Positions 1,691-41,270 of a stretch of 64,000 nucleotides of DNA are shown one piece after another. Source of the DNA: Sminthopsis crassicaudata (Eukaryota). Numbering within the stretch: position 1 is the first letter of the stretch; each line of letters begins with the position of its first letter. The DNA lies in assembly GCF_048593235.1 (NCBI RefSeq), contig NC_133622.1:16926001-16990000 (forward strand), in the 5' to 3' direction. The position numbers and the translations under genes are program-made. The notes beneath the pieces were generated by a model. It ran no database searches. It saw nothing but the letters and a program-made list of their open reading frames with translations, and was not told where the DNA came from.

Positions 1691-2261
1691 ATGGCAACTC
1701 CACCTCTATCTCCATTGGAAAACTCCCACTGTGATGCTAAGAAGAGCACTGAAGATCCACTATATCTGGAAAAGACAAAGTTAGATAAAAGAAGCCCTAG
1801 CAGTGAGTACTGTTCTCTCATGACATTGCCATCTTCCACTCCTCCCCTGGGGAAATAGACCTTATTCCTGATGGTTTTTTACTTTCTTTGGCAGATAATG
1901 CCCATTCTCCTATAAGTAAGATAGAAGTTCTGTCATCTTTTTGTGAAATTGCATTGATGGAAGAGCCAGTGGTGGAAGAGCCAGTGGTGGAGCAAGACCT
2001 ACAGGATGTTCCTGACTTTAGGGACTCAGGGATGGAGTGGTCAGGTATCGCCAGCTCCCCTTCTGTTATTGTTCAGTTCTCTCTGCAATTTTCCTAACAG
2101 AGCCTAGAATGCTTTGCCATTTTCTGTAGATTAACAGCAGCTAAGGGCTGAACCTCCTAGACCTGGCTAGCATCATTGGGAACATTTACAAAAGCAAAAC
2201 CCCAGCCTGCCTTCCCCTGGCTAGCAAGAGATGGGACAAGATTCCAGAAAATGCCAGATCC

Positions 2262-2322
<61 letters not shown>

Positions 2323-5300
2323 ACCTGCACAAGAGCAAGCTTTACATATATGGACACAATAACTAAAGCAATTTGTATAGCTTTTAGCACAGGGGCTGGC
2401 ACAGAGTAAATGTTGAATAAAAGCTTATTCTCTTCCTCTTTGTTTTTGCAGAGAAAGACACCACAGGGAAAATAATTGCTGTCTTCAGAGAGTTCGGAAA
2501 AGGGATCCTCCTCCTGGGATTTCTCTACTTCTTTGTATGTTCCTTGGATGTTCTCGGCAGCGCTTTCCAACTGGTTGGAGGTATGAGACGCGATATCAGC
2601 ACAGATCAAAAGTTTGTGCGTGGCTTTTGTAGCTTAAGAGTTGCTTTTGGTTCAGCATGTAGCCAACCAACTGGCCAACTCAACCCAAGTAATGTCCCCT
2701 TTCTTAAACTCTTCCTGGCCAAGATGTCTCATCTTTTCATCCACTCCAGAGACATGGATGCTTCTCCATTCTTTCTGCCCTTCTCTCTTCCCTCTTCCCT
2801 ACTTACACTCTAATCTTTGGGGAAAAGACACTTTAGGGAATAGGAATCAAAAATTTGTGTGGAAGAATGTGATAGTTGGGCACCTTAGGTCATCAGATAA
2901 AAGTTGTGTTGAGGGTGACCCTCTGTATCTTTGCATTGATGTCTGAATCATAGCTTTGGATTCAGAGATTGGCATCTGTGTTAGATGCATATTTGGATGT
3001 TAGATGTTGTGTTGGCAACAGAAATGGTTTCAAGTGGAAAGAGTGAGAAGTCAAATTTGTCCCCGGAAAGCAACTAGAAAATTGGGGTCGTTTTGGTCCA
3101 AATCAGCCTCCCGGAGACCTTCCTTAACCCCCTCTCCACAGATTCTTCCCAGTCTCCCTCCCTTTGTGTCTGTCTCTCTCTTTCCTCTAATAACCCATAT
3201 CAGGAAAGGGAATAAGCATTTCTAGATCATTTATGTGTCAAGCCCCGCTCTAAGCAAATTCAGCCCTCACTGTCCTCTGCCACATTGCCTTCCTCAGCAG
3301 CCAGTGACTCTTCTTCACTCCTCCTTCCCCCACAGGGGCCTCTAAATTTGGTCTATGGCCCAGAAGTCCCTAATATAACCACATATAATTTAAAATTTTC
3401 CATTCTCTTTGCAGGGAAAATGGCTGGGAAGATTTTCCAAGATGGTTCAGTGTTGAACAACCCTGTGGCTGGCTTGATGATTGGCATGCTGTTGACAGTC
3501 CTGGTGCAGAGTTTCATCACCTCTACATCCATCGTTGTCAGCCTGGTATCCTCTTCACGTGAGTCAGCAGGGTCCCCTCTCCCCCAGTGCCCCAGTCCCT
3601 ATGCCAAACTGGATCTCTTGAAAGAACTTCATGCCAAATTTTAGAACTGTGAAATTGTTCCCTATGTGCCCCAGAGTCATCATCTCCCCGATTTTCCATC
3701 CTTCCAAGCTTGGGACAGAGCTCTTGCTACAGTCTCGATCCGAGCCATGCCCACATATCCCAACATTGCTGCCAGTGGTCTCGTTTTTTGCTATGGGTAA
3801 AGGTCCAGTTGCCCTGCCCCACTTAGAGCCGTGGGCACCTGGTTGCCGCTGTAGGGAGTTGTTCTTCACCCAGATCTTCAAGCAAAGACTGGGTGACTGA
3901 CTGGTTGGAGACATTGTAGAAAAGATTCCTCTTTCTTGGTCTTCATAGTTTCCCTAACTTTTTGCTAAGTTAATTCCTTGGCTTGTTGAAGCTTTTCCCT
4001 ACGAATTTCCCTAGTTTATTTTCATTTTCTTTTTTTCCTTTGACAGTGCTGACAGTAAAGGCAGCCATTCCCATCATCATAGGAGCCAGTATTGGGACTC
4101 CAGTGACCAAGACCATCGTGGCCCTCATGCAGGCTGGAGACAGAAATGGGTTCCGAGGGTATGAAGCTTTTTTTTTTTTTTTTTTAATCACTGCTGTAAC
4201 TGTATTTTATAAAGGTGAGAATCTTTACTCTGCTCTAGATACTCATCTTGCTCTTCCAGTGGTTCTTTCAGAGTGTGGAATAACTACTCAGAAGTTCACA
4301 TAATTCAGCTGAGTTTTCAATAACCTTGAATTGATAATGATTTCATTAAGATTAAGAAGAATAGTTAAAATCTGGCCTCAGACATTCTTTATGTCATATG
4401 ATTGTGATGGAATGCTATTGGGCCATAAGAAAGGATGGGGGGGGGTATAATTTCAGAGTGAAAAAAACCCATCCCATTAATTGCTTTGTTTTTTTCTCCC
4501 TGCTTTAGGGCTTTTGCTGGAGCGACTGTCCACGATTACTTTAACTGGTTGTTAGTGCTGGTGCTGCTGCCCGTGGAGGTGGTCACTGGCTACCTCTACC
4601 ACCTCACCGATCCCATCGTGGAAACCTTTAATATCAATAGCGAGGAAAATGTCCCTGACCTCCTGAAAGTCATCACCGATCCCTTCACCCAACTCATTAT
4701 CCGGGTGAGCATCAAGACTCCCTCTGATTTTAATATGAGAATGAAATGGTGCCAGTGGTGGACTAGGTTCCTGTGAAAGCAGAGCTCTAAGTCTCTTCCC
4801 CCAATCTGTAGTGCCGGTTAGACATGCCTTTCCTTGCTCTGACTCCCCCATTTTATTTGAGGGAGTGGAGCTAAGGGGCTTGCTTGACCCTCCACATTGG
4901 CAGTTGTGTTCTTCAGAACCTCCATTCTGCCATTTGGGGCCCAATCACTGTTTTGTTGGTTGCTTTGTTGCCTTTCTGAACCAGGCACTGGGAGATATGA
5001 TGACCAAATGCGAGCCCCTTCAAGGCTTCCAGGAGCTGGTGGTACTGGCCCCCCAGAATAGGGCAAAAGGGTCTATCTGGCCTGATGCGGGTCAGGTTAA
5101 GATGAGACAGTCCCATGTAGAAGTGAGGTCCTTGGGGAACGAGACCAATTTGTGTCCCTTTTATGTACATCAGGGTTTTGTCTTCTGTGCACTGGAGCCC
5201 CTGGGAGAGTAACTTTTCAGTCACAAATTATAGGTGAGGAACAAGCTAACTCTTTCCTCATGTGTGTTGCTTTTCCAGCTGGATAAAAAAGTCATAAATG

Positions 5301-8005
5301 AAATTGCTATGGGAAATGAGGCAGCCAAAAACAAGAGCCTGATAAAGACTTGGTGTAAAACAGTAAAATATGTGGTAAATATCAGCCCTATACCAAAGCT
5401 CTCCTCACCCTGCCTTAGTTCTACCTCAGACTCTGTGGAGCAGAATGCTTCTCTAAGACAGAGCTAAAGCAAGTGATGCTCAGGTCCCCATTCCAGGGTA
5501 ACAGTGCTCAGGCTGAGCACAGCTGGGCTGACCTTCAGAAGTAACCCAGAGTCTGGACTTTAGATGCTCCATGGTCTATGGACCAAGCACAGAGACAGAA
5601 GGCCTTTTCTAAGCATTATGGGAAAGGTGGAGTAGAGAAGACGGGGAAAGTGAGGATTCATTGGCTAGTACGCCATGTGCAATGAAATCGAATTTTCCAA
5701 AATGCCATTTTCAATAACAAGCTTTTTTTCCTTTATTGTGTCATTTAGGCATTAAGAAATGTTACTGTTCCCTCACCAGAAAACTGCACCTCTCCCAGCT
5801 TCTCCTGGACCAATGGGAACATGACCTGGACCGTCATGAACACAACATCTAAACAGAACATTGCAAAGTGTGAGTAGGAAATCGTTCAGTTAACCCTCAT
5901 GTCCTCACATTTTAAGTCTTTTTAGAAATCCAAAATGGCTTTTTATAAAATCTGTGTGGGACCAGGGTTAAATGTTATTTGTATTTAATTTCAATATCTC
6001 CTGAGATCTTTTGGGGGGAATTATATAAACCTGTGAATTACAACCACTTTCTGTAAGAGCTTGTGCTCTATAGAACGCTCTGTATCTGGGTTAAGTGATG
6101 AAGAAGAGAGAGATGATGACGGGTGGCTGCTCTGGTTCCCACAGGCAAACACGCATTTGTGGATGTCGGTCTCTCTGACCTGACCATTGGACTCATTCTC
6201 CTGGCCCTCTCCTTGCTGGTCCTGTGCACCTGTTTGATCCTGATGGTCAAGGTCCTGAACTCTATGCTCAAGGGACAAATTGCTTCGGTGATTAAGAAGA
6301 CCATCAATACAGGTAGAATTCCTCCCTTCCTGGGCCTTCCTCTGGTCCTCTACTTTTTCTGTCTCTAAGTTTGAAGATTCTATGTTCTGATAAAATGAAT
6401 TTGTAAATAAAGAAATCATCGCTAAGGTCATTGTAAATACAAAAGGGCTCTAGAAATGTCACTGTCCTCAGTAGTTGGCCAGGGAAGATAGTCCCATGCT
6501 GCTCCATCTCCCTCCTACCTTATACACAAACACAGAAGAAGAATGTCCAAGGAAAAGGAATCAAGCGGGCAGAGCATGGCTGTGGTGGCCCTCTCTGGCC
6601 ACCCAAAATAATCAGAGACATTCTCATTAAAATCCTAAAAATCATCAAAGTTATTAATAAAATTAAAGAGCAGTTATTAGGCAAGAAGGAATGGGCTGAC
6701 TGTAAGAGATAGCACAGAGGGCCTAGAGAAAGGAATATGAATTCAAATCCTACAAGTAAGTCACTTGACTTCTGTTTACCCCACTTTCCTCCTCTGTTAG
6801 GATGAGGATAAAATCTACCTTCCAGAGTTTTTTTTGTTAGGATGAAATAGCGATTTGTCAGGACACTTGGACAAACGGGGCCTTTTCTTCTTTCCCCCAG
6901 ATTTTCCTTTTCCTTTTGCCTGGCTGAAGGACTACCTCACCATTCTTGTAGGAGCTTGGAGTACATTTCTGGTGCAGAGCAGCTCTGTGTTCATGTCTAC
7001 CATCATTCTTCTGTTTGGTGAGTTCTCCCTTTTCCCCCCATTTCCCCTTGCCCATGTCCATGTCTCCATTTTTACATTGGTCTTGCCATGCTGAGTCATT
7101 CCCAGCCAGGACTGAACCTGTATTCCCTCTCCCCCCTTAGGCATCAGAGTGATCAGCCTGGAGAGAGCGTACCCCTGGACCCTGGGCTCCAACTTCGGCA
7201 CCACCACCACGACCCTCCTGACTACTCTGGCCAGCTCTGGAAGCACTTTGCCAGATTCCCTCCAGGTCAGAATGCACAGTTGGGACCTTCTGTTCTTTCC
7301 TCAACTTCCCACTCCATCCTTCCCATAAGCACCGGGGTTCCTTTTTTGAAAGATCCTCCATATCCCAAAGGGTCGCTGGTTGCTGCCGAGGTCTCAGCTG
7401 CCTCTGAACAGTGACTTGGGGGCTAGAGAACCATCCCTAGCTCTTGTTCTCACAAGCTGAATTTCCTAAGAAATGACCAGATATCTACAGCTTGTGTCTT
7501 AATAAACAAATGAGGATGGTGAAGTTTCACCCCCATCTGCAACTAGTCCCCTGTCCCCCACATAGATTGGTATGGATAACTTCCCCCTTTGCCCTCCTCT
7601 GAGTCAGAAAACGAGAAAAGGTGGAAACAATGTCTGACTTGTTTGAAGTTTGAGTATGAATCTCAGCTGTTACTTGCTAGGTGACTGGTATAGATCCAAG
7701 CTCTGTGTGCAGTGGGGGGGGGGGGGGGGACAAAGGTCCCGGGAATATGGCAAGTGAACGAGCATCTTTTTAGATTCCAGTGAAGCTGGCATGGTGATGA
7801 TGGCAGTACATACTTTTCTTCCCTCTGATTCCCTCCCACCTAATTCCAGCTAACTGCTCTCTCCCCAAATTTCCCATTTCCACAGAGTATGAAGGAAAGG
7901 GCCACCTGGACTGAGGAAGAACAAGCATTCCTCCAATCCCCTGTCACCTATTTGAGGACATATGGACCCTTATCCTGGTCTTCCACTGTATGTAACTCTA
8001 CCTGA
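1691..8005 (+). CDS. SLC34A2: SLC34A2-like gene alpha1: exons 2-12 intact (490 aa), native terminal exon absent, putative new terminal exon (529 aa total)
   Basis: Coding exons 1691-1802, 1895-2044, 2452-2580, 3415-3558, 4047-4158, 4509-4704, 5279-5374, 5749-5869, 6145-6312, 6901-7017, 7141-7265, all GT-AG and phase-compatible. Sizes 112/150/129/144/112/196/96/121/168/117/125 match recalled human SLC34A2 except exon 3. Motifs include [48 protein letters not shown] and GSNFGTTTT. The last exon 7886-8005 is inferred. Confidence 0.88.
2264..2315. repeat. (TG)26 microsatellite, intron 3 of alpha1
   Basis: Direct count. Confidence 0.95.
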
Positions 8006-14420: not shown

Positions 14421-14559
14421 ATCCCAAACTATTATGCGTCTGAGATTAGATTTGAAAGTCTTCCTCATTCCAAGTGCAGCATTATATGCAGTGCAGCACC
14501 TAGACTTTCCCAATAACAGTATTTGTACTTTGTTAGAGATTCATGTGTGGGGCAGCGAG

Positions 14560-14650
14560 AGATGGAGGGAGGGGACAGAGAGAGACAGAGAAAGACAGAC
14601 AGACAGAGAGAGACACACATAGAGAGAAAGACAGAGAGAGATAGAAAGTT
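14560..14650. repeat. (GA/GACA)n low-complexity tract
   Basis: Repeated near 25180, 31290, 47825 and 58440. Confidence 0.8.
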
Positions 14651-17774: not shown

Positions 17775-17912
17775 GGGGCAGCTAGGTGGCACAGTGGATA
17801 GAGCACCAGCCTTGAATTCAGGAGGACCTGAGTTCAAATGTGGTCTCAGACACTTAGCACTTCCTAGCTGTGTGACCCTGGGCAAGTCACTTAACCCCAG
17901 CCTCAAAAAAAA
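17775..17912 (+). mobile_element. Young tRNA-derived CORE SINE (WSINE1-like), beta-specific, intron 1
   Basis: GGGGCAGCTAGGTGGCACAGTGGATAGAGCACC..GGACCTGAGTTCAAAT..A-tail. 16-bp TSD AGTGATTTATTATGAA (17759-17774, 17913-17928). Empty site in alpha near 1415-1427. Confidence 0.9.
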
Positions 17913-18185
17913 AGTGATTTATTATGAATTTGAGGCAGGAGAAGAGAAAGAATGAATGCAGGGAGAAGGGATATGATTTAATAGCAAAGACAGATGTATG
18001 GATGAAAATAAAAGTTTTAAATTTATAAAATGGCCCCATGAGTTCACCCTTTGTTTGTTTGTTTGTTTTTAATGAGTTTTAGAACATCTTTTTTTTTTTT
18101 TTTGGTGCTATTGTTGTGTGACTAATTGTCCTGATGCAAAATCCAGTCGGTACATATTTTCTTTTAAATTTTATTAATTCAGACC

Positions 18186-18923
18186 ATGGCAACTCCACCT
18201 CTATCTCAATTGGAAAACTCCCACTCTGCTGCTAAGAAGAGCACTGAAAATCCACTGTATCTGGAGAAGATAAAGGAAGATAAAGGAAGCCCTAGCAGTG
18301 AGTACTGTTCTCTCATGACATTGCCATCTTCCACTCCCCCCCTGGGGAAATAGACCATATTCCTGATGGTTTTTTACTTTCTTTGGCAGATAATGCCCAT
18401 TCTCCTATAAGTAAGATAGAAGTTTTGTCATCTTTTTGTGAAATGTCATTGATGGAAGAGCCAAAGATTAAAGACCTAGTGATGGAAGAGCCAGTGGTGG
18501 AGCAAAACCTACAGGATATTCCTGACTTTAGGGACTCAGGGATCAAGTGGCCAGGTAACACCAGCTCCCCTTCTGTTATTTTTCAGTTCTCTTTACTGAG
18601 AGCCTAGTATGCTTTACCCTTTTCTGTAGTGACCCTGTTTATCGATAAGGAAATGAGCTAAGAAAGAATTGACTTGCCCAGGGTCATACAATTAGTAAGC
18701 ATGTGAGATTTGATTTTAATTCAGGAAGATGAGGCAGGTAGCATTGTTCGGCTATAGAGAAGAACTGGGGCAGGACTAACAGCAGCTAAGAGCTGAACTT
18801 CCTAAGGGTGGCTAGCATCATGGGGAACATTTGGGGGCCAAAACTTCTTTACAAAAGGAAAACCCCAGCCTGCCTTTTCCTGGCCAGAAAGAGATGGGAC
18901 ACGATTCCAGAAAATGCCAGATC

Positions 18924-18973
<50 letters not shown>

Positions 18974-19462
18974 CTGCCTAAGAGCAAGCTATACATACGT
19001 GAATACAATAAACAAAGCAATATTTGGATGGCCCTTAGCAAGGGGCTGGCACATAGTAGGTGTTGAATAGAAGCTTATTCACTTCCTTTTATTTCGGCAG
19101 AAAGAGACATCACAGGGAAAATAATTGCTGTCTTCAGAGGGGTTGGAAAAGGGATCCTCAGCTGCTGGTCATGCTGCAGGCTGAACGGATGCTGCAAGAG
19201 ACACAAGAAATGTCCAGAAATGGAGGAAGATCAGGAAAAGTCATGTAAAATCCCCCTCAGGGGCCATGAGGGACATGAGGAAACTGCAGAAACAACTATG
19301 GAATTCCAAGCCAGGTATCCAGACACAGAAGGAAAGCTCAGAAGACCAGGAAGGATGGGAGAACCCTTGCGTTATTGTGGCAGCTCAGAAATCTTTGCTC
19401 TGCCTCTTTATAAGAGCGATGACTTTTTATATTCATTTTGCCAAATACATACTCTTTTCTGA
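18186..19462 (+). CDS. SLC34A2: SLC34A2-derived gene beta1: 212-aa protein without transmembrane core (N-tail fused to Cys-rich C-tail)
   Basis: Exons 18186-18297, 18390-18554, 19101-19462 (112+165+362=639 nt, open, ACCATGG Kozak, GT-AG). Exon 4 sequence [20 protein letters not shown] runs directly into SCWSCCRLNGCCKRHKKCPEMEEDQE, which resembles the NaPi-IIb tail. Confidence 0.82.
18927..18970. repeat. (TG)22 microsatellite, intron 3 of beta1
   Basis: Direct count. Confidence 0.95.
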
Positions 19463-21203
19463 ATCTCTGATTCCCTCCCACCTAATTCCAGCTCACTCCT
19501 CTCTCCCAACAATTTCCCATTTCCAAAGAGTGTGAAGGAAAGGGGCACCTGGACTGAGGAAGAACAAGCCGTCCTCAAATCCCATGTCACCTATTTGAGG
19601 TCATAGGGAGCCTTAGCCTGATCTTGCACTTTAAATAAATCTTCCAAAACACATGTATAGTCAGGAAATTGTATAGGTTTTCATTGGATAGTAAATTACT
19701 TTTATGATTCTGGTTTTATATTGCTACCATTGGAAAGAAATATTTAATTAGTAAATATCTTTATCTAAATCTATAGTCAATATAAACAAGAACATCTGTA
19801 TTATATATTGTAAATTTTGTCATGTTTACGATAATTTCATTAAAAAAATTTTCAGCAATCACTGCCATTCTTTTTGCTTAGTAGATTGTGTACATAGGAA
19901 AAGTTCCTAGCCAACTCCTTTTTACTTTCTTTCTATTTTATTTACATGTACAATACTTCCAAATACATTTCCGTATTTGTAACACTGTACAATAAAAATC
20001 AGAGATAGAAAAAAACATGAAGAAGAAAAGGCAAAGGGACAAACAAAAATGAGAAAATACTATGCTTCAATCCACATTCGGTGTCCATGGTTGTTTCTCT
20101 GGACATGGATAATTTATTTAACCCATTTTTAAGTCCTTCTTGTAATTGAAATATTTTGAATAAATAAGTTTTTCTAGAAATAATTTTTTAAGGATAGTAG
20201 AAAAGCCTGTGTTGTAGGATAGAGTAAAATATGTTCTTTTTTATCATCTTTATTGATAAACTATATAGTACATATTCTAAATATGCATTTCAAGATTCTG
20301 GGTTACAAAAATAATGTATGTTATGAAAACTTATTACGCTAAATGAAACTTCAGAAAACTTTAAAATTAAATTTCAAAAAACACAATATCTGATGGTCAA
20401 GAGAAGATAAATCATGACTTTATGTACAAATTATTCAAGCATTAAGAAAATAGCTGCTTCAATATTGCACCGTGTGTATATTCTTAAACAATTGATAAAC
20501 ATATATGGAATCTTTTATAGGACAGACCACCAATGAAAAAGTATTATAAACCACTTTACTAATAAAGTTTGAAGAAAACTCCCAATGTAATTGTGGGGTA
20601 AACAATAGAAAACACCTATTTTAAATGTGACTTTGTCAGTTGTATCTCAACTCTCCATGACTCTATTTGGGATTTTCTTGTCAGGGATAGAGGAGTGCTT
20701 TGCCATTTTCTTCTCCCGTTCATTTTTTGTACTATCTTTTAAACTTGTCCATAAGCATACTATAAATACAGAAATTTAGTGCCTCTTGGCTCTCCTTTAC
20801 ACTTTCTATTTCTTTTTTTCCATTTGGATTGGTCATGTGATCTGTGTACTTGGTGTGCTTTGACATATTTTCAGAAAGACAGATTGTTCTTGAACTAATT
20901 CAAAAGACTGAATCGCAGAGGTTATTTAACTATTTTTTTCTCTTAGAGTTCCATGATCAGATATCCCTAAAGGACTGTAATTTTTGACATGAGTCGTCTT
21001 AAATGTAGTTTTAAAGGTGCACAGACATTGATATTTACAGGAAGTAGGAAGTTCTCTTCCTCAATATGAAAAATAATGTCATGTGATCAAGGAAGAGGCG
21101 AATAAGACATTTTTAGTTTCAAAAAGGAGTTGAAATGAGAGAATTGTCAAGCTCGTCTCAGGAGGAAGAACACTCCTAGATTGTTAGAGGGAGGAGGAAC
21201 TCT

Positions 21204-24927: not shown

Positions 24928-26780
24928 CATGCCCAACTCTTTATGACTTCATCTGGGGTTTTTGTAAAGATCCTAGAGTGGTTTGCATCTCCTCTTCCAG
25001 CTCATTTTATAGTTAAGGAACTGAGGCAATCAGGATCCCAAACTATTATGTGTCTGAGATTAGATTTGAAAGCCTTCCTCATTCCAAGTGCAGCATTATA
25101 TGCAGTGCAGCACCTAGACTTTCCCAATAATAGTATTTGTCCTTTGTTAGAAATTCATGTCTGGGGCAGCGATAGATGGAGGGAGGGGACAGAGAGAGAC
25201 AGAGAAAGACAGACAGACAGACAGAGAGACACATAGAGAGAGAAAGACAGAGAGAGATAGAAAGGTCAGGGAAAGTTTCAAGTAAAAGGCTATTTTTGAG
25301 CTGACCTTTGAAGAACTATAGTGATTATGTGCAAGAATAGAAAATAGCACATCCATAGTCCTTAGTTAATTTAGTTAACACACAGTGCTGAAAGAATGAT
25401 AACTGATTGGTAAATAGGGAAAAATGGCTTCCCATCTGAAATGATGATGTTTAAAGGAAAAGTTGTTGATCGATTAGTTGGGTGACACTTCACCTCACAT
25501 ACTCATCCTTCCTCCCCCTCAAATTCTCTCTGAAATTGTTATTGAAGGGTTAAGACAAGTACTCGATAAATACTAGAAGTCAAGTGTTCCAATAGAACAA
25601 TAATGGGACTCAATGAAATTCTCTCCTCAATCTCAAAGTATGATCTACAATTTGCTTCATAGATTGTCTTCACTAATTGAGCCAAGGTCACCACTGTGCA
25701 TTTGAATGTTGGAGTTCACATTTCCCAGTCTGGAGGAATAATGTGGAAGGGCAGTAGGTGCAGATTAGGCCCAGGGAGGGTTTTATTATTCATCACTGGG
25801 GATTCTTCCAGAATTGGAAGATGATAGATTGGTCCTGCAACTCCTTGAGGAGAAGGGAAGCCTCTACTGACCAGGACAGTTTGGTCCTTTCTGAAGCTGT
25901 TGGGTAGGGAATAAGTACATATGATAGAAGTCCCATGGAAGCTAAGAAGATTCTTCTGTTGCAACTCTTGATTCCCTCTCCAATATTTATTTTTTCCAAT
26001 GACATGTACAGATAATTTTCGACATTCACTTCTTTAAGATTTTGAGCTACACTTTTCTCCCCTCCAGCTCTCCTAGATGACAAGCAATGTGATAGAGTTT
26101 GCTATCTAGGTGCAGCATTTCTTTTCCGAGTCTGGTTTTGTTTGGGTTGTTTGGAAGGCTGTTTTGGGACTATACCTGTGTACTCATCAATAAATGGAAT
26201 GGAGGATGAAGGACTTGCCCACCAAGGCTAGTGGACACCTCTTCAACTTGGATAGTTAGACAATGGTGAGGGCCACTAGGAAGTTCAGTGATGTGCCTTG
26301 AGTGAAAAAGATACTAAAGTGAAGGGTGAACCAAGTGATCAGCCCAAAGTCTTGAAATTCATGATTGAGCCCCACATAAACACCAACAGATTCTCATTAC
26401 AAATAAACCTTTTAATGTACTGGACCCCCTGCTCTGCTTCTCTCTCGTTTGCATATTTGTAACATTATACAATAGAAATCTGATCAATTGAATCCACATT
26501 CAGTGTCCATGGTTTTTTCTCTAGATATGGATGATATTTACTTACTTCTTTTTTTAGCTATACTTTTCAGGTGGAAGGTGGAAGTTATAAGTTTTTTTAG
26601 AAAAAAATTTTCAAGAATATGAGAAACACCTATGTTGTAGGATAGAGTAAAAATTGTTTTTATCATCTTTATTGATAAAGATTATTTACATATTCTTAAT
26701 ATACCTTTCAAGCTTTTGAATTACAAAAATAATGTACCTTATGAAAAGTTATTGCACAAAGTGAAACTACAGAAAACTTT

Positions 26781-26921
26781 TTTTTCCCTGAGGCTGGGGT
26801 TAAGTGACTTGCCCAGGGTCACACAGTTAGGAAGTGTTAAGTGTCTGAAACCAGATTTGAACTGGGGTCCTCCTGAATTCAAGGTGGGTGCTCTATCCAC
26901 TGGGCCACCTAGCTGCCCCTC
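26781..26921 (-). mobile_element. Young SINE (WSINE1-like), gamma-specific
   Basis: Reverse-strand copy with TSD CAGAAAACTTT (26770-26780, 26922-26932). Empty site in alpha (about 8650) and beta (about 20350). Confidence 0.9.
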
Positions 26922-28261
26922 CAGAAAACTTTAAAATTAAATCTCAAAAAACACAATATATCTGAGGGTCAAGAGGAGATAAATTAAATCACAAATTTAT
27001 ATACAAATTATTAAAACATTAAAGAAAATAAGATGCCTCAATATTGCACCATGTATATATTCTCATACAATTGATATATATAATAAATGAAACCTATATG
27101 GAACATTTTATAGGACACACGACCAATGAAAAAGTATTGTAAACAAGTTTACTAATAAAGTTTGAAGTAAACTCCCTATGTATTTGTGGGGTAAACAATA
27201 GAAAACACCCATTTTGTTACTGTGACTTTTTCAGTTGTGTCGCAATTCTCCATGACTCCATTTGGGATTTTCTTGACAGATATTGGAGTAGTTTGCCATT
27301 TTCTTCTCATGTTCATCTTTTATACTTGTTCGTAAGCATACTATAAATACAGAACCTAAGTACCTCTTTGATCTCCTTTACACTTTGTCTTTTTCCATTT
27401 GCATTATTCCTGTGATCTGTGTACTTGGTATGCTTTGACATGTTTTTGGAAAGACATTGTGCTTGAACTGATTGGTCAAGAAGAATGGATCACAGAAGTT
27501 ATTTGATTTTTCCCCCCTTAGAGTTCCATGCTCAGATATCCCTGAAGGATTGTAACTTTTTTTTTTGCTTTTCAAGGAACTTTACTGGAACTTGTTAGTT
27601 TGATATTTCAAATTTAATCTTTTCTCTAAAAATAGAAAAAAAATAACAATCACACAAGACCAAACCCCAAACATTGCTTATTTCCAGCTTCTTTAGAGTG
27701 ACTGTCAATAGTTGACAGTGTCCTATACAATGGAAAAAAAATACTAAACATCCATATGTTTTCTTACCCTTGTATGGAAGAAAGCAATAAGTCATGGGCC
27801 GGTTTCCATTCACACACATGCCCATTGTCACCCTCAAGTACCAAATCAAAAAATTTCATTACAAACATTTTTGAGCATAATCCTGTTAAGAAAGTTGTGT
27901 TTTTCCTAATGAAAAAAGCCACAATTGCATTAGAGAAATAAGTAATCACTGAATTAAATGATAATTTTACTATGAAAGATTATTTTGATTAAAGCTATAA
28001 AAAGTAGTTCATTAAAAACATCAGTACTATAGAACAGAAGAAGTGTAATTTTTGACAAAAGTTATCTTAATTTGGTATTTATGTAGTTTAAAGGTGCACA
28101 GACATTGATATTTAGAGGAACTAGGAAGTTCTTTTCTCAGTATGAAAAATAAGTTCATTTGATCAAGAAAGAGGCAAGTAAGACACTTTTAAGTCCAAAA
28201 AGGAGTTGAAGCTCATCTCAGGAGAACTAGCACTCCTAGATTGTTAAAGGGGAGAGGAACT

Positions 28262-28509
28262 GGCTGTGTTTGTTGGTTGACATGTGTAGTCCTTGCTCCT
28301 AGGGAGCCGAGGCTGGTGGATCCTTGGAGCCCTGAAGTTCTAAGGTGTTACAAAGCTCATGAGCCCATCGGGTGTCTCCATTAAGCCTGGCTTCAATAGG
28401 ATGAGCCTGCAGAAGTGGAAAACCACCATGCCCAAGGAGGGACACCAGGCTCAGGTGAACAGTGAGTGGCTGTTACACTTCCAATCTGAATGAGATAGGA
28501 TAACTCACT
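28262..28509 (+). pseudogene. 7SL-derived element (gamma1 copy)
   Basis: Homologous to 9509-9755. Confidence 0.8.
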
Positions 28510-31500
28510 GGTATGGAGGAAGACAGGATAGAAAAAAGAAGAAAGGAACTTCAGAGATGATAGAGTATCTTCCTTTTTTTTCACTTTCTATTTTGATCAG
28601 GACTTACCCTTTATTATAGATGAACAGGAATTCAAACATCTCCATTTTAGTTAACAGATAGCCAAAGTTGGAGTAATTAAACTCTGACATATCTTTACTT
28701 TTAAAAGTTTATTTATTTTTAATATACATTGTTTTATGAATTATGTTGAGAGAAAGAATAAAGAAAAAAAAAGCAAAAAGGGAGAGACAGAGACAGAAGG
28801 AAGGGGCTTTACAGATGATCCAGTCTGCTCCTAAAAGAAAGAAAAAAGAATACAGGGAGGGAAGGAAAAGAAGGAAGTGAGAGAAAGGAAGGAAGCAAGG
28901 GAGGGGCTTCATAGATCTTGTCCAGTTCTCTGAATTTATAAATGAAGAAGCTGACCACCACAAATGAAAAAAACTGCATGAGTTGCCATGATATGTAGCA
29001 GAGCTAAAATCGGAATTCTGTTCTTCTGCCTTCTAGTCTAGTGTCTTTTTCCAACAATATCCTACCTGGAATTGTGATTGTTTTTTGTTTGTTTTGGGTA
29101 TTTTGGGGACAATAGTGAGCAAGCCACTTGCCCTCAGCTTCCTCAGCATGGGCCCTGTCCTATGTTTCAGACACCTATTTGGTTTTCTCTTCTGTCCCTC
29201 CTTATTATTTCTCCAGAATTATGGGAATTAATTGACATAAGATTTGAACTCATGTCTTCTTCATTGTACTTTGCCACCTTGCTTCCCCTTAAATTAGCCA
29301 TTCTTATTTTTTTTGTGTGTTTTATGGACCTTTTGGTCAATCTATGTATTCTTTCTCCAAATAATATTTGTAAATAGATAAAACAGAACACATAGGATTA
29401 CAAAAGAAATTGATTACATTGAAATGTCATAAATCAATAATTTATTTTATTTTAAAAATTCACCGACCCAGAGCAAGAACTGCTAGAGAAAAATTAGTGG
29501 TGAAATATGAGGCTACTTTCAGTGAAGGAATACAAAACCTTGTTTTTGTTTTTGTTTTCTGTTTTTTTTTACTCAAAATTCATAGCAAAATTTCAGTAGT
29601 ATGTAAGCTCATTGAAAGAAAGCCTTTTTATTTATTTATTATATTTTTAAAACTCATTTGCTTTCATTTGTCATTTTACTTTCATTTACCCAGTGTCTAA
29701 TAGAGGACTTTGCACATAGCTGATTCTTACTAACTCTTTGCTGAATAAATGAAAGATAACATGTATAAAACTATGACAACATTTTCATTTCTTTCTTGAG
29801 GCCAGTGCTAAATGAAAGGAGATTTACTACTTTCTTTATTCATTCAACTAATATTTGTCAAGCACCTACCAAGTGCTAACCTACTGTGAGCCCTGCAAGT
29901 AACTGAGGCATCAGAGAAAGTAGGTTACATCACTACTAGAATCATAGAATTTCAGAGCTGAGAGAAACATTATAAGTCATCTAGTCCCTGTAAGAATCCC
30001 CTTTTTAATAACATGAACCTTGCCCAAAGGGCTATAAAATCATTAAAACTGGCAAAACCACTAGTAGGCATGAATCCTGAATGAAATTTTTTAGGAGAGA
30101 AAAGGAACCTATAAGTTCTACAAAAATATTTTCAGCAGCTTGTAAAGAGCAGCAACTTTGGAGAAATATACTTAAGGCTCAGTAGTATTGATTTAATCCT
30201 ACAAGGTGTTAACTTGTAGAAGTATACTAAGTACATGTAAACTAGATACCCATTGTCTTCTCAATTCCACTGAGTTAACACCTTGTGTGTAGTATACTTT
30301 GGGCTCTCATTTTGGGGGTTCTCACATTCCTAAGAAGTCAGGGAGGGCATGCCTATCTCTGTTCAAAAACAAAGGAATGTGGGTGATGTAGAGAGCCAGA
30401 ACTTTTGTAAAGTCTACTTAAAAGAAGGTGTTAACTCAGTGGAATTGATAAGATAAAGGTTATTTACTTTACCTGCACTTAGTATAGTTCTACAAGTTGA
30501 CACTTAACAGTAGAAGTAAATCACTCATACTGAGCCTTAATTATATGTCCCCCAAATTACTGCTCTTTACAGCAGCTCTCTTCTCGGAACAAAAAACTGG
30601 AAACTGAGGGGATGCCCATCAATTGGGGAATGGATGAATAAATTGTGTCATGTGATTCTGATAGAATATTATTGCTCTATGAAAAATGATGAGAAGGATG
30701 TTTTCAGAAAAACCTGGATAACTGTACACAAATTCAAGCAACGTGAAATACACTGAAGTAATAGAAACTTTGAGGATGATCAGATGGGAATGACTTCGGG
30801 GTTTTGTAAGAATCAAATGAGATTTTTGTAAAGTTTTTAAAACAGTGCCTCGAACATAGTAAATGCTGTACACCTGTGAGCTATAAGTGTTCTCCAAAGT
30901 CACAGAGAAAGTGAGGATCAAGTGCTCTAACTTTAGATCCAGTGTTTATTCTACTATTCCATAGGGAGCCCCCAAGTTTATAGTTCTTACCCACTTTTTG
31001 CCCAATTTTACTCTACCAATAATATTGTTGTTTGTACAGTCATGCCCAGCTCTTTATAACTGCATCTGGGGTTTTCTTGGTTAAGATCCTAGAGTGGTTT
31101 GCATCTCCTCTTCCAGCTCATTTTATAGTTAAGGAACTGAGGAAATCAGGGTCCCAAACTATTATGTGTCTGAGATTAGATTTGAAAGTCTTCCTCATTC
31201 CAAGTGCAGCATTATATGCAGTGCAGCACCTAGATTTTCCTAATAATAGTATTTGTATCTTGTTAGTGATTCATGTCGGGGGGAGGAACAGGTGAAGGGA
31301 GGACAGAGAGAGACAGAGAAAGACAGACAGACAGACAGATATAGAGAGAAAGACAGAGAGAGACAGAAAGTTCAAGGAAAGTTTCAAGTAAAAGGCTATT
31401 TTTGAGCTGACCTTTGAAGGACTTTAGTGATTATGTACAAGAATAGAAAATAGCACATGCATAGTCCTTAGTTAACTTAGTTAACACGCAGTGCTGAAAG

Positions 31501-32759
31501 AATGATAACTGATTGGTAAATGGTGAAAAATGGCTTCCCATCTGAAAAGGATGATGTTTAAAGGGAAAGTTGTTGGTTGATTAATTGGGTGACACTTCAC
31601 GTCACATACTCATCCTTCCTCCCTCTCAAATTCTCTCTGAAATTGTTATTGAAGGGTTAAGACAAGTACTCGATAAATACTAGAAGTCGTGTTCCAATAG
31701 AACAATAATGGGACTCAATGAAATTCTCTCCTCAATCTCAAAGTATGATCTACAATTTGCTTCCTAGATTGTCTTCACTAATTGAGCCAAAGTCACCACT
31801 GTGCATTTGAATGTTGGAGGTCACATTTCCCAGTCTGGAGGAATAATGTGGAAGGGCAGTAGGTGCAGATCAGGCCCAGTGAGGGCTTTCTGGTTTATCA
31901 GTGGGGATTCCCTCCAGAATTGGAAGATGATAGATTGATCCTGCAACTACTTGAGGACAAGGGAAGCCTCTCCTGAGCAGGACAGTTTTGTCATTTCTGA
32001 CTAGTGGCTTGAAGTGAAAGAGGAAGTCACAGATAGTGCCAGCAGTCTCTCTGAGCTGCAAAGCTGTTGGGTAGGGAGTAAATACATATAAGAGAATTCC
32101 CATGGAGGCTAGGAAGATAATTCTGTTGCAACTCTTGATTCCCTCTCCAGCCCCCTTCTCTCCCATAGTAGTTTATTTGTTCCAATAACATGTAAACATA
32201 ATTTTCAACATTTAATTTTATAAGATTTTGAGCTATATTTTTCTCCCTTCCCCTCTCCTAGATGACAAGCAATGTGATAGGGTTTGCTATCTAGGTGCAG
32301 CATGTCTTTTCCTAGTCTGTTTTTGTTTGGGTTGTTTGGAAGGCTGTTTTGGGACTAGACCTGTGAACTCATCAATAAAGGGAATGGAGGATGAAGGACT
32401 TGCCCACCAAGGCTAGTTGACACCTCTTCAACTTGGATAGTTAGACAATGGTGTGGGCTACTAGGAACTTCAGTGATGTGCCTTGAGTGAAAAAGATACT
32501 GAAGTGAAGGGTGAACCAAGTGATCAGCCCAAAGTCTTGAAATTCTTGATTGAACCCCAATAAAGACCAATGGGTGCTCATTACATATCAACCTTTTAAT
32601 GCACTGGACCCCCTGCTCTGCTTCTCTCTAGTTTGCATTTCTTTCTGCAAAATGAATGAGAACCTGAGGAAAACGTTCCCTTGGAAATGGGCTGATGGTG
32701 GGTGGGTGGGTTCTAGGAGGTGAGAACAGGAGCTGAGGTGGTAAATGGTGTAGGCTTTT

Positions 32760-33151
32760 GTCCAGAGGGCCCCAATCAGCCAGGCTTCCCACCCACGCCT
32801 TCTCAGTAGTGCTATAAAAAGCGGTCCTCCAGGTGGATGAAGCCAGAGCAGCAGAAGAAGCTCCTTTGGCGTCTCCTTCCCTTCTTCTGAAGCAACATTC
32901 CTGGGCCTCTGGGGAGACTGGCACCGAAGTATCCACAACTCTCAGTGGGCTGAATCGAGCTCCCGGCTCCTGTGGCCGGGCTAAAGATTGGAAAGAGAAA
33001 GGACCCTGGTGATCGAGAACGAGGGTGAGAGTCTGTGGGCCCCTTCCCTGGACTGCCCCCCCTGCCCTGTGCCGAGAAGCCAGCTCCCACTACAGCTCAC
33101 ATCTGGGCCACTTTAAGCACCTTGGACAGATCCCTCAGACCACAGGTAAGC
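32760..33151 (+). promoter_or_regulatory. Putative promoter and non-coding exon 1 of alpha2
   Basis: CCAAT 32772-32776, TATAAAA 32813-32819, CpG-enriched, no ATG between 32840 and the donor at 33145/33146. Confidence 0.6.
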
Positions 33152-34835: not shown

Positions 34836-35543
34836 ATGGCAACTCCACCTCTATCTCCATTGGAAAACTCCCACTGTGATGCTAAGAAGAGCACTGAAGA
34901 TCCACTATATCTGGAAAAGACAAAGTTAGATAAAAGAAGCCCTAGCAGTGAGTACTGTTCTCTCATGACATTGCTATCTTCCTCTCCTCCCCTGGGGAAA
35001 TGGACCTTATTCCTGATGGTTTTTTACTTTCTTTGGCAGATAATGCCTATTCTCCTATAAGTAAGATAGAAGTTCTGTCATCTTTTTGTGAAATTGCATT
35101 GATGGAAGAGCCAGTGATGGAAGAGCCAGTGGTGGAGCAAGACCTACAGGATGTTCCTGACTTTAGGGACTCAGGGATGGAGTGGTCAGGTAACGCCAGC
35201 TCCCCTTCTGTTATTGTTCAGTTCTCTCTGCAATTTTCCTGACAGAGCCTAGAATGCTTTGCCATTTTCTGTAGTGACCATGTGTATAGATAAGGAAATG
35301 AGGTAAGGAAGAAGTGACTTGCCCAAGGTCATACAACGAGTAAGCCTCTGAGATCCACTTTGAACTCGGGAAGATGAGGCATTGTTGGCCTCAGAGAAGA
35401 GCTGGGGCTGGATTAACAGCAGCTAAGGGCTGAGCCTCCTAGAGCTGGCTAGCATCATTGGGAACATTTACAAAAGCAAAACCCCAGCCAGCCTTCTCCT
35501 GGCTAGAAAGAGATAGGACAAGATTCCAGAAAATGCCAGATCC

Positions 35544-35606
<63 letters not shown>

Positions 35607-38600
35607 ACCTGCACAAGAGCAAGCTTTACATATATGGACACAATAACTAAAGCAATTTGTATAGCTCTTAGCACAGGGGCTGGCACAGAGTAGGTGTTGA
35701 ATAAAAGCTTATTCTCTTCCTCTTTGTTTTTGCAGAGAGAGACACCACAGGGAAAATAATTGCTGTCTTCAGAGAGTTTGGAAAAGGGATCCTCCTCCTG
35801 GGATTTCTCTACTTCTTTGTATGTTCCTTGGATGTTCTCGGCAGCGCTTTCCTACTGGTTGGAGGTATGAGAAGCGATATCAGCACAGATCAAAAGTTTC
35901 TGCGTGGCTTTTGTAGCTTAAGAGTTGCTTTTGGTTCAGCATGTAGCCAACCAACTAGCCAACTCAACCCAAGTAATGTCCCCTTTCTTAAACTCTTCCT
36001 GGCCAAGATGTCTCATCTTTTCATCCACTCCAGAGACGTAGATGCTTCTCCATTCTTTCTGCCCTTCTCTCTTCCCTCTTCCCTACTTACACTCTAGTCT
36101 TTGGGGAAAAGACACTTTGGGGAATAGGAATCAAAAATTTGTGTGGAAGGATGTGATAGTTGGGCACCTTAGGTCATCAGATAAAAGTTGCGTTGAGGGT
36201 GACCCTCTGTATCTTTGCATTGATGTCTGAATCATAGCTTTGGGTTCAGAGATTGGCATCTGTGTTAGATGCATCTTTGGATGTTAGATGTTGTGTTGGC
36301 AACAGAAATGGTTTCAAGTGGAAAGAGTGAGAAGTCAAATTTGTCCCCGGAAAGCAACTAGAAAATTGGGGTCGTTTTTGTCCAAATCAGCCTCCCGGAG
36401 ACCTTCCTTAACCCCCTCTCCACAGATTCTTCCCAATCTCCCTCCCTCTGTCTCTGTCTCTCTCTTTCCTCTAATAACCCATATCAGGAAAGGGAATAAG
36501 CATTTCTAGATCATTTATGTGGCAATCCCCGCTCTAAGCAAATTCAGCCCTCACTGTCCTCTGCCACATTGCCTTCCTCAGCAGCCAGTGACTCTTCTTC
36601 ACTCCTCCTTCCCCCACAGGGGCCTCTAACTTTGGTCTATGGCCCAGAAGTCCCTAATATAACCACGTATAATTTAAAATTTTCCATTCTCTTTGCAGGG
36701 AAAATGGCTGGGAAGATTTTCCAAGATGGTTCAGTGTTGAACAACCCTGTGGCTGGCTTGATGATTGGCGTGCTGGTGACAGTCCTGGTGCAGAGTTTCC
36801 TCACCTCTATATCCATTGTTGTCAGCCTGGTATCCTCTTCACGTGAGTCAGCACGTTCCCCTCTCCCCCAGTGCCCCAGTCCCTATGCCAAACTGGATCT
36901 CTTGAAAGAACTTCATGCGAAATTTTAGAACTGTGAAATTGTTCCCTATGTGCCCCAGAGTCATCATCTCCCCGATTTTCCATCCTTCCAAGCTTGCTAC
37001 AGTCTCGATCCGAGCCATGCCCACATATCCCAACATTGCTGCCAGTGGTCTCGTTTTTTGCTATGGGTAAAGGTCCAGTTGCCCTGCCCCACTTAGAGCC
37101 GTGGGCACCTGGTTGCCGCTGTAGGGAGTTGTTCTTCACCCAGATCTTCAAGCAAAGACTGGGTGACTGACTGGTTGGAGACATTGTAGAAAAGATTCCT
37201 CTTTCTTGGTCTTCATAGTTTCCCTAACTTTTTGCTAAGTTAATTCCTTGGCTTGTTGAAGCTTTTCCCTACGAATTTCCCTATTTTCTTTTCATTTTCT
37301 TTTTTTCCTTTGACAGTGCTGACAGTAAAGGCAGCCATTCCCCTCATCATAGGAGCCAGTATTGGGACTCCAGTGACCAAGACCATCGTGGCCCTCATGC
37401 AGGCTAGAGACAGAAATGGGTTCCACAGGTAGGTAGCTTTGTTTTTTTTTTTTTTAATCACTGCTGTAACTGTATTTTATAAAGGTGAGAATCTTTACTC
37501 TGCTCTAGATACTCATCTTGCTCTTCCAGTGGTTCTTTCAGAGTGTGGAATAACTACTCAGAAGTTCACATAATTCAGCTGCGATTTCAATAACCTTGAA
37601 TTGATAATGATTTCATTAAGATTAAGAAGAATAGTTAAAATCTGGCCTCAGACATTCTTTATGGCATATGATTGTGATGGAATGCTATTGTGCCATAAGA
37701 AAGGATGGGGGGGGTATAATTTCAGAGTGAAAAAAACCCATCACATTAATTGCTTTGTTTTTTTCTCTCTGCTTTAGGGCTTTTGCTGGAGCGACTGTCC
37801 ACGATTACTTTAACTGGTTGTTAGTGCTGGTGCTGCTGCCCGTGGAGGTGGTCACTGGCTACCTCTACCACCTCACCGATCCCATCGTGGAAACCTTTAA
37901 TATCAATAGCGAGGAAAATGTCCCTGACCTCCTGAAAGTCATCACCGATCCCTTCACCCAACTCATTATCCGGGTGAGCATCAAGACTCCCTCTGACTTT
38001 AATATGAGTATGAAATGGTGCCAGTGGTGGACTAGGTTCCTGTGAAAGCAGAGCTCTAAGTCTCTTCCCCCAATCTGTAGTGCCGGTTAGACATGCCTTT
38101 CCTTGCTCTGACTCCCCCATTTTATTTGAGGGAGTGGAGCTAAAGGGCTTGCTTGGCCCTCCACATTGGCAGTTGTGTTCTTCAGCACCCCCATTCTGCC
38201 ATTTGGGGCCCAATCACTGTTTTGTTGGTTGCTTTGTTGCCTTTCTGAACCAGGCACTGGGAGATATGATGACCAAATGCGAGCCCCTTCAAGGCTTCAA
38301 GGAGCTGGTGGTACTGGCCCCCCAGAATAGGGCAAAAGGGTCTATCTGGCCTGATGGGGGTCAGGTTAAGATGAGACAGTCCCATGTAGAAGTGAGGTCC
38401 TTGGGGAACGAGACCAATCTGTGTCCCTTTTATATACATCAGGGTTTTGTCTTCTGTGCACTGGAGCCCCTGGGAGAGTAACTTTTCAGTCACAAATTAT
38501 AGGTGAGGAACAAGCTAACTCTTTCCTCATGTGTGTTGCTTTTCCAGCTGGATAAAAAAGTCATAAATGAAATTGCTATGGGAAATGAGGCAGCCAAAAA

Positions 38601-41270
38601 CAAGAGCCTGATAAAGACTTGGTGTAAAAGAGCAAAATATGTGGTAAATATCAGCTCTATACCAAAGCTCTCCTCACCCTGCCTTAGTTCTACCTCAGAC
38701 TCTGTGGAGCAGAATGCTTCTCTAAGACAGAGCTAAAGCAAGTGATGCTCAGGTCCCCATTCCAGGGTAACAGTGCTCAGGCTGAGTGCAGCCCAGCTGA
38801 CCTTCAGAAGTAACCCAGAGTCTGGACTTTAGATGCTCCATGGTCTATGGACCAAGCACAGAGACCGAAGGACTTTTCTAAGCATTATGGGGAAGGTGGA
38901 GTAGAGAAGACTGGGAAAGTGAGGATTCATTGGCTAGTAGGCCATGTGCAATGAAATCGATTTTTCCAAAATAACTATTTTCAATAACAAGCTTTTTTTC
39001 CTTTATTGTGTCATCTAGGCATTAAGAAATGTTACTGTTCCCTCACCAGAAAACTGTAACTCTCCCAGCTTCTCCTGGACCAATGGGAACACGACCTGCA
39101 CCGTCATGAACACAACATCTAAACAGAACATTGCAAAGTGTGAGTAGGAAATCTTTCAGTTAAACCTCATGTCCTCACATTTTAAGTCTTTTTAGAAATC
39201 CAAAATGGCTTTTTATAAAATCTGTGTGGGACCAGGGCTAAATGTTATTTGTATTTAATTTCAATATCTCCTGAGATCTTTTGGGGAGGACTGTGTAAAT
39301 CGCTGAATTACAACCACTTTTTGTAAGAGCTAGTGCTGGGTAGAACACTGTTTCTGGGTTAAGTGATGAAGAGGAAGAGAGAGATGATGACGGGTGGCTG
39401 CTCCGGTTCCCACAGGCAAACACACATTTGTGGATGTCGGTCTCTCTGACCTGACCATTGGACTCATTCTCCTGGCCCTCTCCTTGCTGGTCCTGTGCAC
39501 CTGTTTGATCCTGATTGTCAAAGTCCTGAACTCTATGCTCAAGGGACAAATTGCTACGGTGATTAAGAAGACCATCAATACAGGTAGAATTCCTCCCTTC
39601 CTGGGCCTTCCTCTGGTCCTCTACTTTTTCTGTCTCTAAGTTTGAAAATTCTATGTTCTGAGAAAATGAATTTGTAAATAAAGAAATCATCGCTAAGGTC
39701 ATTGTAAATACAAAAGGGCTCTAGAAATGTCACTGTCCTCAGTAGTTGGCCAGGGATCATTGTCCCAAGCTGCTCCATCTCCCTCCTACCTTATACACAA
39801 ACACAGAAGAAGAATGTCCAAGGAAAAGGAATCAAGCGGGCAGAGCATGGCTGTGGTGGCCCTCTCTGGCCACCCAAAATAATCAGATATTCTCATTAAA
39901 ATCCTAAAAATCATCACAGTTATTAATAAAATTAAAGAACAGTTATTAGGCAAGAAGGAGTGGGCTGACTGTAAGAGATAGCACAGAGGGCTTAGAGAAA
40001 GGAATATGAATTCAAATCCTCCAAGTAAGTCACTTGTCTTCTGTTTACCCCACTTTCCTCCTCTGTTAGCATGAGGATAAAATCTACCTCCCAGAGTTTT
40101 TTTTGTTAGGATGAAATAGCGATTTGTCAGGACACTTGGACAAACGGGGCCTTTTCTTCTTTCCCCCAGATTTTCCTTTTCCTTTTGCCTGGCTGAAGGA
40201 CTACCTCACCATTCTTGTAGGAGCTTGGAGTACATTTCTGGTGCAGAGCAGCTCTGTGTTCATGTCTGCCATCATTCTTCTGTTTGGTGAGTTCTCCCTT
40301 TTCCTCCCATTTCCTCTTGCCCATGTCCATGTCTCCATTTTTACATTGGTCTTGCCATGCTGAGTCATTCCCAGCCAGGACTGAACCTGTATTCCCTCTC
40401 CCCCCTTAGGCATCAGAGTGATCAGCCTGGAGAGAGCGTACCCCCGGACCCTGGGCTCCAACTTCGGCACCACCACCATGACCATCCTGACTACTCTGGC
40501 CAGCTCTGGAAGCACTTTGCCAGATTCCCTCCAGGTCAGAATGCACAGTTGGGACCTTCTGTTCTTTCCTCAACTTCCCACTCCATCCTTCCCATAAGCA
40601 CCGGGGTTCCTTTTTTGAAAGATCCTCCATATCCCAAAGGGTCGCTGGTTGCTGCAGAGGTCTCAGCTGCCTCTGAACAGTGACTTGGGGGCTAGAGAAC
40701 CATCCCTAGCTCTTGTTCTCACAAGCTGAATTTCCTAAGAAATGACCATATATCTACAGCTTGTGTCTTAATAAACAAATCAGGATGGTGAAGTTTCACC
40801 CCCATCTGCAACTAGTCCCCTGTCCCCCACATAGATTGGTATGGATAACTTCCCCTCTTTGCCCTCCTTTGAGTCAGAAAACGAGAAAAGGTGGAAACAA
40901 TGTCTGACTTGTTTGAAGTTTGAGTATGAATCTCAGCTGTTACTTGCTAGGTGACTGGTATAGATCCAAGCTCTGTGTGCAGTGGGGGGGGGGGACAAAG
41001 GTCCCGGGAATATGGCATGTGAACGAGCATCTTTTTAGATTCCAGTGAAGCTGGCATGGTGATGATGGCAGTACATACTTTTCTTCCCTCTGATTCCCTC
41101 CCACCTAATTCCAGCTAACTGCTCTCTCCCCAAATTTCCCATTTCCACAGAGTATGAAGGAAAGGGCCACCTGGACTGAGGAAGAACAAGCATTCCTCCA
41201 ATCCCCTGTCACCTATTTGAGGACATATGGACCCTTATCCTGGTCTTCCACTGTATGTAACTCTACCTGA
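34836..41270 (+). CDS. SLC34A2: SLC34A2-like gene alpha2: exons 2-12 intact, putative new terminal exon
   Basis: Exons 34836-34947, 35040-35189, 35736-35864, 36699-36842, 37317-37428, 37778-37973, 38548-38643, 39019-39139, 39416-39583, 40170-40286, 40410-40534, putative 41151-41270. Open frame and GT-AG throughout. Confidence 0.88.
35546..35599. repeat. (TG)27 microsatellite, intron 3 of alpha2
   Basis: Direct count. Confidence 0.95.

Follow-up and report, generated by a model that had tools for sequence, protein, structure and literature searches.

A tandem array of SLC34A2-type units

The window analysed here, a 64-kb stretch of DNA without gaps, contains a 33.3-kb block that is repeated in tandem at 98.5% identity, with positions 2129-30740 corresponding to 35411-64000 in a self-comparison. 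Each block is composed of three older units; their similarity is 78-97%, according to segment, with a value of about 82-85% over the gene and its near flanks. The first unit carries a multi-exon gene, alpha, and the second carries a shorter gene, beta, located 11.8 kb downstream of alpha on the same strand. The features of the array are as follows:

1-16310: unit A, which carries alpha (self-comparison)
1691..7265, + strand: alpha1, with 11 coding exons, 486 codons open, all splice sites GT-AG and the last exon absent (gene model)
16311-26460: unit B, which carries beta and is without alpha's 2511-7806 (self-comparison)
19446..20003, + strand: 3' flank common to beta and alpha (7807-8360, 85%), starting 16 nt before the beta stop
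26461..33092, no strand assigned: unit G, a gene-less third unit with 3'-flank sequence only (self-comparison)
34836..40534, + strand: alpha2, same model as alpha1 but with a GC donor at exon 8 (comparison with alpha1)
23079-23501, 13420-13840 and 30141-30571, with copies in the second block: palindrome segment (self-comparison)

Unit G is recognisable from segments at 26488-26780, 26919-27560, 28038-31055, 31041-32000 and 32061-32638, which match the 3' flanks of alpha and beta. The palindrome, which occurs once per array unit, is imperfect, spans about 420 nt and is about 70% alike to its own reverse complement. Apart from a 120-codon open reading frame on the minus strand (24574-24936), which was recognised by eye as resembling the C-terminal part of LINE-1 ORF2, no noteworthy long open reading frame is present in the rest of the block.

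One of the alpha exons matches zebrafish Slc34a2a (PDB 9z60) with an E value of 1.9e-21, and the alpha exons give Na_Pi_cotrans signals that are weak and in all cases under the Pfam gathering score. The first QSSS-type motif of alpha reads QSFI in alpha1 and QSFL in alpha2. Positions 17913-19159 of the beta unit align to alpha 1413-2510 and 34558-35794 at 81-84% identity with the same exon borders, but the alpha exons that encode the membrane core (2581-7265) have no counterpart in beta. Homology between alpha and beta resumes at 7807, which corresponds to 19446, and alpha has no match to beta 19169-19445, so that the last exon of alpha has been deleted. The large deletion is thus a different one in each unit, comprising the last exon in alpha, the equivalent of alpha 2511-7806 in beta and the whole gene in the third unit. 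Since the alpha and beta deletions overlap, the right-hand border that they have in common needs no special event.

A smaller difference is seen within an intron, where approximately 140 nt (35274-35411 in alpha2, 18629-18774 in beta1) are present in alpha2 and both beta copies and missing in alpha1 at position 2129. This is a deletion specific to alpha1 and later than the 33-kb duplication.

The beta reading frame and the break in exon 4

Beta is present in two copies, one in each block, and its coding parts are arranged as follows:

18186..18297, + strand: first coding exon of beta1, with the ATG at 18186, encoding the SLC34A2 N-terminal tail (translation; 8.9% divergence from alpha 1691-1802)
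18390..18554, + strand: second coding exon of beta1, carrying an in-frame insertion of 15 nt (at about 18463-18477) that alpha does not have (translation and alignment; acceptor ...ctttggcag, donor CAG|GTAACA)
19101..19159, + strand: part of exon 4 lying 5' of the junction in beta1, ending ...GKGIL, the first residues of predicted TM1 (alignment to alpha 2452-2510; rat TM1 at 95-117, PMC5451523)
19160..19462, + strand: post-junction tail of beta1, with a Cys cluster, a basic run, an acidic run, about 80 more codons and the end HTLF-TGA (sequence and translation)
51442..52723, + strand: beta2, with three exons (51442-51553, 51646-51810 and 52362-52723) and 212 codons open (comparison with beta1)

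Spliced beta1 (18186-18297, 18390-18554 and 19101-19462) comprises 639 nt, with 212 codons ending in a TGA at 19460-19462. A sequence-only reading of this stretch had proposed that the N-terminal tail is joined in frame to a Cys-rich tail at 19159/19160 without an intervening intron, giving a protein of 212 residues, and this was reproduced from the spliced sequence. Translation and inspection of the sites likewise bore out the claim that the frame is open to its stop and that splice sites and start context are intact: the introns are GT-AG, with donors CAG|GTGAGT (first intron) and CAG|GTAACA (second intron), both acceptors consist of a pyrimidine tract followed by CAG, and the start context is gaccATGG. 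The same fusion had been attributed to beta2, which indeed has the same structure as beta1, from which it differs by 6 nt and 5 amino acids. A single-base change in beta yields a stop in 5.5% of cases.

The non-coding surroundings of beta show several peculiarities of their own. A SINE-like insert of about 130 nt (17782-17912 and 51042-51171) lies approximately 270 nt 5' of the exon with the ATG and is missing from alpha at the matching place; relatives of this element occur at 17180-17325, 827-974 and 26776-26926. Downstream, an AATAAA at 19634-19639 is private to beta1, beta2 and both alphas having TAAC at its last four bases. Five differences between beta1 and beta2 fall within 20 nt when 19634-19658 is compared with 52895-52919, and at most of these beta2 agrees with alpha.

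Beyond ...GGGATCCTC, exon 4 of alpha (2452-2580) goes on to encode the hydrophobic core of the first membrane helix, whereas beta at the same point passes to AGCTGCTGGTCATGCTGC. Homology of beta to alpha ends at 19159, or extends as far as 19168 if an imperfect 7-nt microhomology (CTGCTGG versus CTCCTGG) is counted. Exon 4 had been described as identical to alpha up to the break; in fact 4-6 of its 59 nt differ, which amounts to 90-93% identity. Close to TM1 beta reads RGVGKGIL, alpha REFGKGIL and rat Slc34a2 QGIGKFIL, the residues of beta being the more conservative. The tabulated rat protein has TM1 at residues 95-117 and a Cys string at 618-640, in which 17 of the 23 residues are Cys (PMC5451523). 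Measured against this table, the break does not fall just before the first transmembrane segment, as had been proposed, but nine residues inside predicted TM1 (PMC5451523).

The post-junction frame contains 6 Cys within 17 residues (codons 114-130, nt 19163-19213), at positions 114, 117, 118, 123, 124 and 130. The cluster is flanked by the hydrophobic stretch IIAVFRGVGKGIL and by the basic run KRHKK, which is followed by an acidic run. As beta has only 6 clustered Cys against the 17 of the rat string, the rejoining point would lie inside the Cys string. With these corrections, the proposal that every membrane span has been removed with both cytoplasmic ends kept is supported in its structural part, beta having the N-terminal cytoplasmic tail and reading in frame into a Cys-rich and then acidic tail. 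No membrane span was found in beta, in which no 19-residue window reaches a Kyte-Doolittle value of 1.6 (the highest value, 1.35, is found at the junction), compared with 66 windows that do so in alpha by the same test. The C-terminus, H-T-L-F, fits the pattern of a putative class I PDZ ligand (S/T-x-hydrophobic).

Database comparisons found no relatives of the tail. A Pfam scan detected no Na_Pi_cotrans domain (PF02690) in the terminal exon; a hit to FAM163 in the same exon (17.2 bits against a cut-off of 28.3) was taken as compositional. The post-junction peptide has no match in the PDB at E values up to 10, the terminal-exon peptide has none by phmmer among 1.84 billion representative proteins and only chance-level matches in the ESM Atlas, and no contig encoding the 80-residue open reading frame of beta1 or beta2 is on record. 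Neither tblastn (E up to 10) nor blastn with word size 7 matches the tail to alpha, and among NaPi-IIb C-terminal peptides in the literature only the rat Cys string was found. A single-sequence structure prediction gave no confident fold for beta (pLDDT 42).

The alignments to alpha support the view that beta is a derivative of an SLC34A2-type gene that has kept the N-terminal cytoplasmic tail and lost every membrane exon of alpha. On composition and position only, the post-junction peptide is a candidate descendant of the SLC34A2 last exon: it has a Cys cluster, it is located just 5' of the shared 3' flank, and a Cys string occurs at 618-640 in the rat protein (PMC5451523).

Substitution patterns and word shares in sequencing runs

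The coding sequences of beta1 and beta2 differ by 6 changes, 5 of them nonsynonymous and 1 synonymous, which taken alone are too few to reject an omega of 0.2 (p = 0.06). Divergence of the beta coding sequence (6/639) is not significantly lower than that of the introns (11/638; p = 0.23). Over the 321 nt of N-terminal tail shared by alpha and beta, 20 nonsynonymous and 5 synonymous differences were counted (Nei-Gojobori dN/dS 1.1-1.9), and an omega of 0.3 or less is rejected (p = 0.0045). The counts for beta1 against beta2 and for the N-terminal tail fit an omega of 1, with low power for beta alone. Alpha1 and alpha2 are separated by 28 nucleotide differences, about 23 nonsynonymous and 5 synonymous, so that an omega of 0.5 or less is rejected (p = 0.017), and some of these changes strike conserved transporter motifs (W to R in AYPWTLG, T to M in GTTTT). 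Differences are even across codon positions. The patterns in beta, alpha and the N-terminal tail together indicate that the array has been drifting since the latest duplication without detectable constraint at the protein level.

The deletion in beta is, as far as the sequence of the window reaches, older than the duplication at 98.5% identity, and dating from the window alone stops there. Survival of both beta frames since that duplication is unremarkable under neutrality, the chance of it being, by our estimate, modest but not small enough to surprise. Between alpha and beta, intron 2 has diverged by 12-13% and the first two coding exons by 6-9%. The 92-nt intron that separates these exons (18298-18389) differs by only 1-5 bases from its alpha counterparts at 1803-1894 and 34948-35039, a low divergence that could be due to local gene conversion or to the presence of an element under constraint.

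We also considered the share of sequence words from 18100-19600, and from the intron-rich part at 18298-19100, that is contained in eight public sequencing runs (X1-X8). Runs X1-X4 hold 0.43-0.54 of the words of the whole stretch and 0.41-0.60 of those of its middle part, close to the 0.61 expected for the latter from beta2-like sequence alone. Coverage of introns in these four runs is no poorer than that of exons, so that they provide no evidence for a mature mRNA. Run X5 holds 0.24 of the words of 18100-19600 and 0.14 of those of 18298-19100, where the second coding exon (exon B) alone would give 0.13-0.175. In X6-X8 the corresponding shares are 0.20-0.31 and below 0.05, the latter value leaving exon A, or the terminal exon together with the sequence 3' of it, as the place where the words of these runs lie. 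The pattern in X5-X8 fits a transcript that is mature or 3'-biased; it could also stem from a paralogue elsewhere whose last exon is nearly identical. The SLC34A2 orthogroup is expanded in dasyurids (PMC12866920) and expression of an SLC34A2-like gene is high in the uterus of the pregnant opossum (PMC5012577). These publications do not specify which paralogue was measured, and the supplements of the latter do not identify the SLC34A2-like gene (PMC12866920, PMC5012577).

Origin of beta and comparison with known systems

We consider it probable that beta is an unprocessed, deletion-truncated duplicate within a tandem array, possibly transcribed, with no selected protein function: a young relic in neutral drift. 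Array decay through large deletions, of which one chanced to be in frame, is the most economical account of all the observations. Unequal crossing-over generated an array of units, each comprising an upstream region, a gene and a 3' flank. In one unit a genomic deletion of at least 5.3 kb linked codon 112, which lies in exon 4 where TM1 begins, to what by composition and position is the distal Cys string of the last exon, the ends probably being united by end joining with a few bases of microhomology at most. Such a deletion may be in frame by chance (1 in 3), and with the last exon read in its native frame the open frame would extend to the old stop region without any selection. The upstream block, splice sites and start context have been kept and the stop is placed in the last exon, so that beta could be transcribed, could escape nonsense-mediated decay and may even give rise to a 212-residue protein without membrane spans. 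Beta and its neighbours have drifted without detectable protein-level constraint, as the comparisons above show with modest power, and probably no function has been selected in beta. Two marks of an unprocessed pseudogene are found in beta, namely a duplicated copy that retains introns and flanks, and a lesion that abolishes the parental function. Origins by retrocopying or cryptic splicing were rejected, as beta retains its two upstream introns and alpha has no GT where the break falls. Several points nevertheless count against a truncated duplicate. If the deletion were as old as the split between alpha and beta, neutral survival of 212 codons and of all splice sites in both copies would be unlikely. 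An omega near 1 also fits a young gene under changing selection. The more conservative residues of beta next to TM1 are a further point against a relic, as are the word shares in X5-X8, which fit a mature transcript.

The main alternative is that beta encodes a working protein of 212 residues, built from both cytoplasmic tails of NaPi-IIb and acting as a decoy or adaptor, with an S-acylated Cys cluster as membrane anchor; we regard this as unlikely. The anchor would be aided by the hydrophobic remnant of TM1 and by KRHKK, and the protein would engage partners of the transporter tails, for example sorting or PDZ proteins. The termini of NaPi-IIb are described as cytoplasmic and its Cys string as palmitoylated, with an effect on sorting to the apical membrane (PMC13024260, PMC9335355), in agreement with what the sequence-only reading had said of this tail and in keeping with a tail-tail protein; a role of the C-terminal region in sensitivity to PI(4,5)P2 has been proposed but not shown (PMC6656865). 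A Cys cluster beside a hydrophobic remnant and a basic run can plausibly anchor a soluble protein, so the notion of a lipid anchor is biochemically reasonable, and the 6 Cys in 17 residues of beta do adjoin IIAVFRGVGKGIL and a basic run. Preservation of the open frame, splice sites and start context in two copies, a T-L-F end that would suit a class I PDZ ligand, word shares in X5-X8 that fit exon-only coverage, and the dasyurid expansion and high opossum uterine expression of SLC34A2-like genes (PMC12866920, PMC5012577) point the same way. Against this, purifying selection was not seen in any comparison, the neighbouring copies are degraded and drifting, only about one third of a typical Cys string is left, the predicted structure (pLDDT 42, single sequence) has no confident fold, and there are no homologues among the 1.84 billion representative proteins. 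A more specific version, in which beta is a marsupial-lineage gene that arose by an in-frame intragenic deletion and whose palmitoyl-anchored product would, in a tissue with high expression of the family, vie with the full-length SLC34A2 paralogues for their partners in sorting, PDZ proteins or lipids, seems to us quite doubtful. The sequence comparisons support derivation from an SLC34A2-type gene, with an N-terminal tail that reads into a Cys-rich one, but the lipid-anchored adaptor or decoy that had been suggested found no support, as the substitutions fit neutrality and the neighbours carry large deletions of their own.

It is highly unlikely that the exons of beta matter as RNA only, either in chimeric or read-through transcripts of the array, in which alpha would use the terminal exon of beta, or in a non-coding transcript that affects the paralogues. 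Alpha is without a last exon of its own and beta follows 11.8 kb downstream on the same strand, which favours such use, but when checked by hand no AG at 19099-19161 would let a phase-0 donor be spliced in frame to the Cys tail. A chimera of alpha exon 12 with beta 19101 was discarded, since phase 0 is joined to a phase 1 acceptor, out of frame, and a stop is reached 7 codons later. An assembly artefact, in which a collapsed or mis-joined repeat or two haplotypes placed in tandem make the deletion or the second copy unreal, is scarcely credible. A dense array of similar units is hard to assemble, and X1-X4 hold about 0.5-0.6 of the words, near the 0.61 given for the middle stretch by beta2-like sequence alone; on the other hand, two copies have the same junction and are distinguished by differences at 1.5% of the positions at and near it, the window is free of gaps, and to either side of the junction the flanking sequence is collinear with alpha.

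If beta is only a relic, it provides a clean example of a solute-carrier tandem array that decays by large deletions, and demonstrates that an open frame, even where the splice sites are intact, is no evidence of a gene, which bears on the annotation of SLC34A2 expansions in marsupials. Should the protein be produced and have a use, beta would be one of few transporter genes to have become a soluble, lipid-anchored regulator, and would offer a natural tool for studying the tails of NaPi-IIb acting alone.

The parent gene family of beta is SLC34A2/NaPi-IIb. Its N-terminal exons are homologous to those of alpha, whose further exons match zebrafish Slc34a2a (9z60), its ...GKGIL beginning of TM1 is like that of rat Slc34a2, and the Cys-rich part is followed by an acidic part and a T-x-hydrophobic end. 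In contrast to NaPi-IIb, beta possesses neither membrane helices nor the two Na_Pi_cotrans repeats, and hence cannot be a transporter. It resembles unprocessed pseudogenes with internal deletions in being tandem-duplicated, in keeping introns and upstream region while essential domains are lost, in having substitutions that fit neutrality and in its damaged array neighbours. It is unlike them in that the deletion is in frame and no premature stop or frameshift is present, so that formal marks are missing and a protein could be made.

DNAJC5 (cysteine-string protein), SNAP-25 and PLSCR1 are peripheral membrane proteins that are palmitoylated at a cluster of Cys residues. Beta may be likened to these in having a Cys cluster beside hydrophobic and basic residues and no membrane span (for palmitoylation of such clusters see also PMC9335355), and a working beta protein would depend on this cluster for membrane binding. 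Unlike DNAJC5, SNAP-25 and PLSCR1, to which it has no homology, beta lacks a J domain, a SNARE domain and any other effector part. A further parallel is with the truncated alpha, beta and gamma isoforms of rat kidney NaPi-2, which Tatsumi and colleagues, in 1998, reportedly found to inhibit the full transporter. These are likewise shortened SLC34 products that might interfere with the full-length protein, but they are alternative splice products of a single gene and still have membrane helices, whereas beta is a separate copy that has none.
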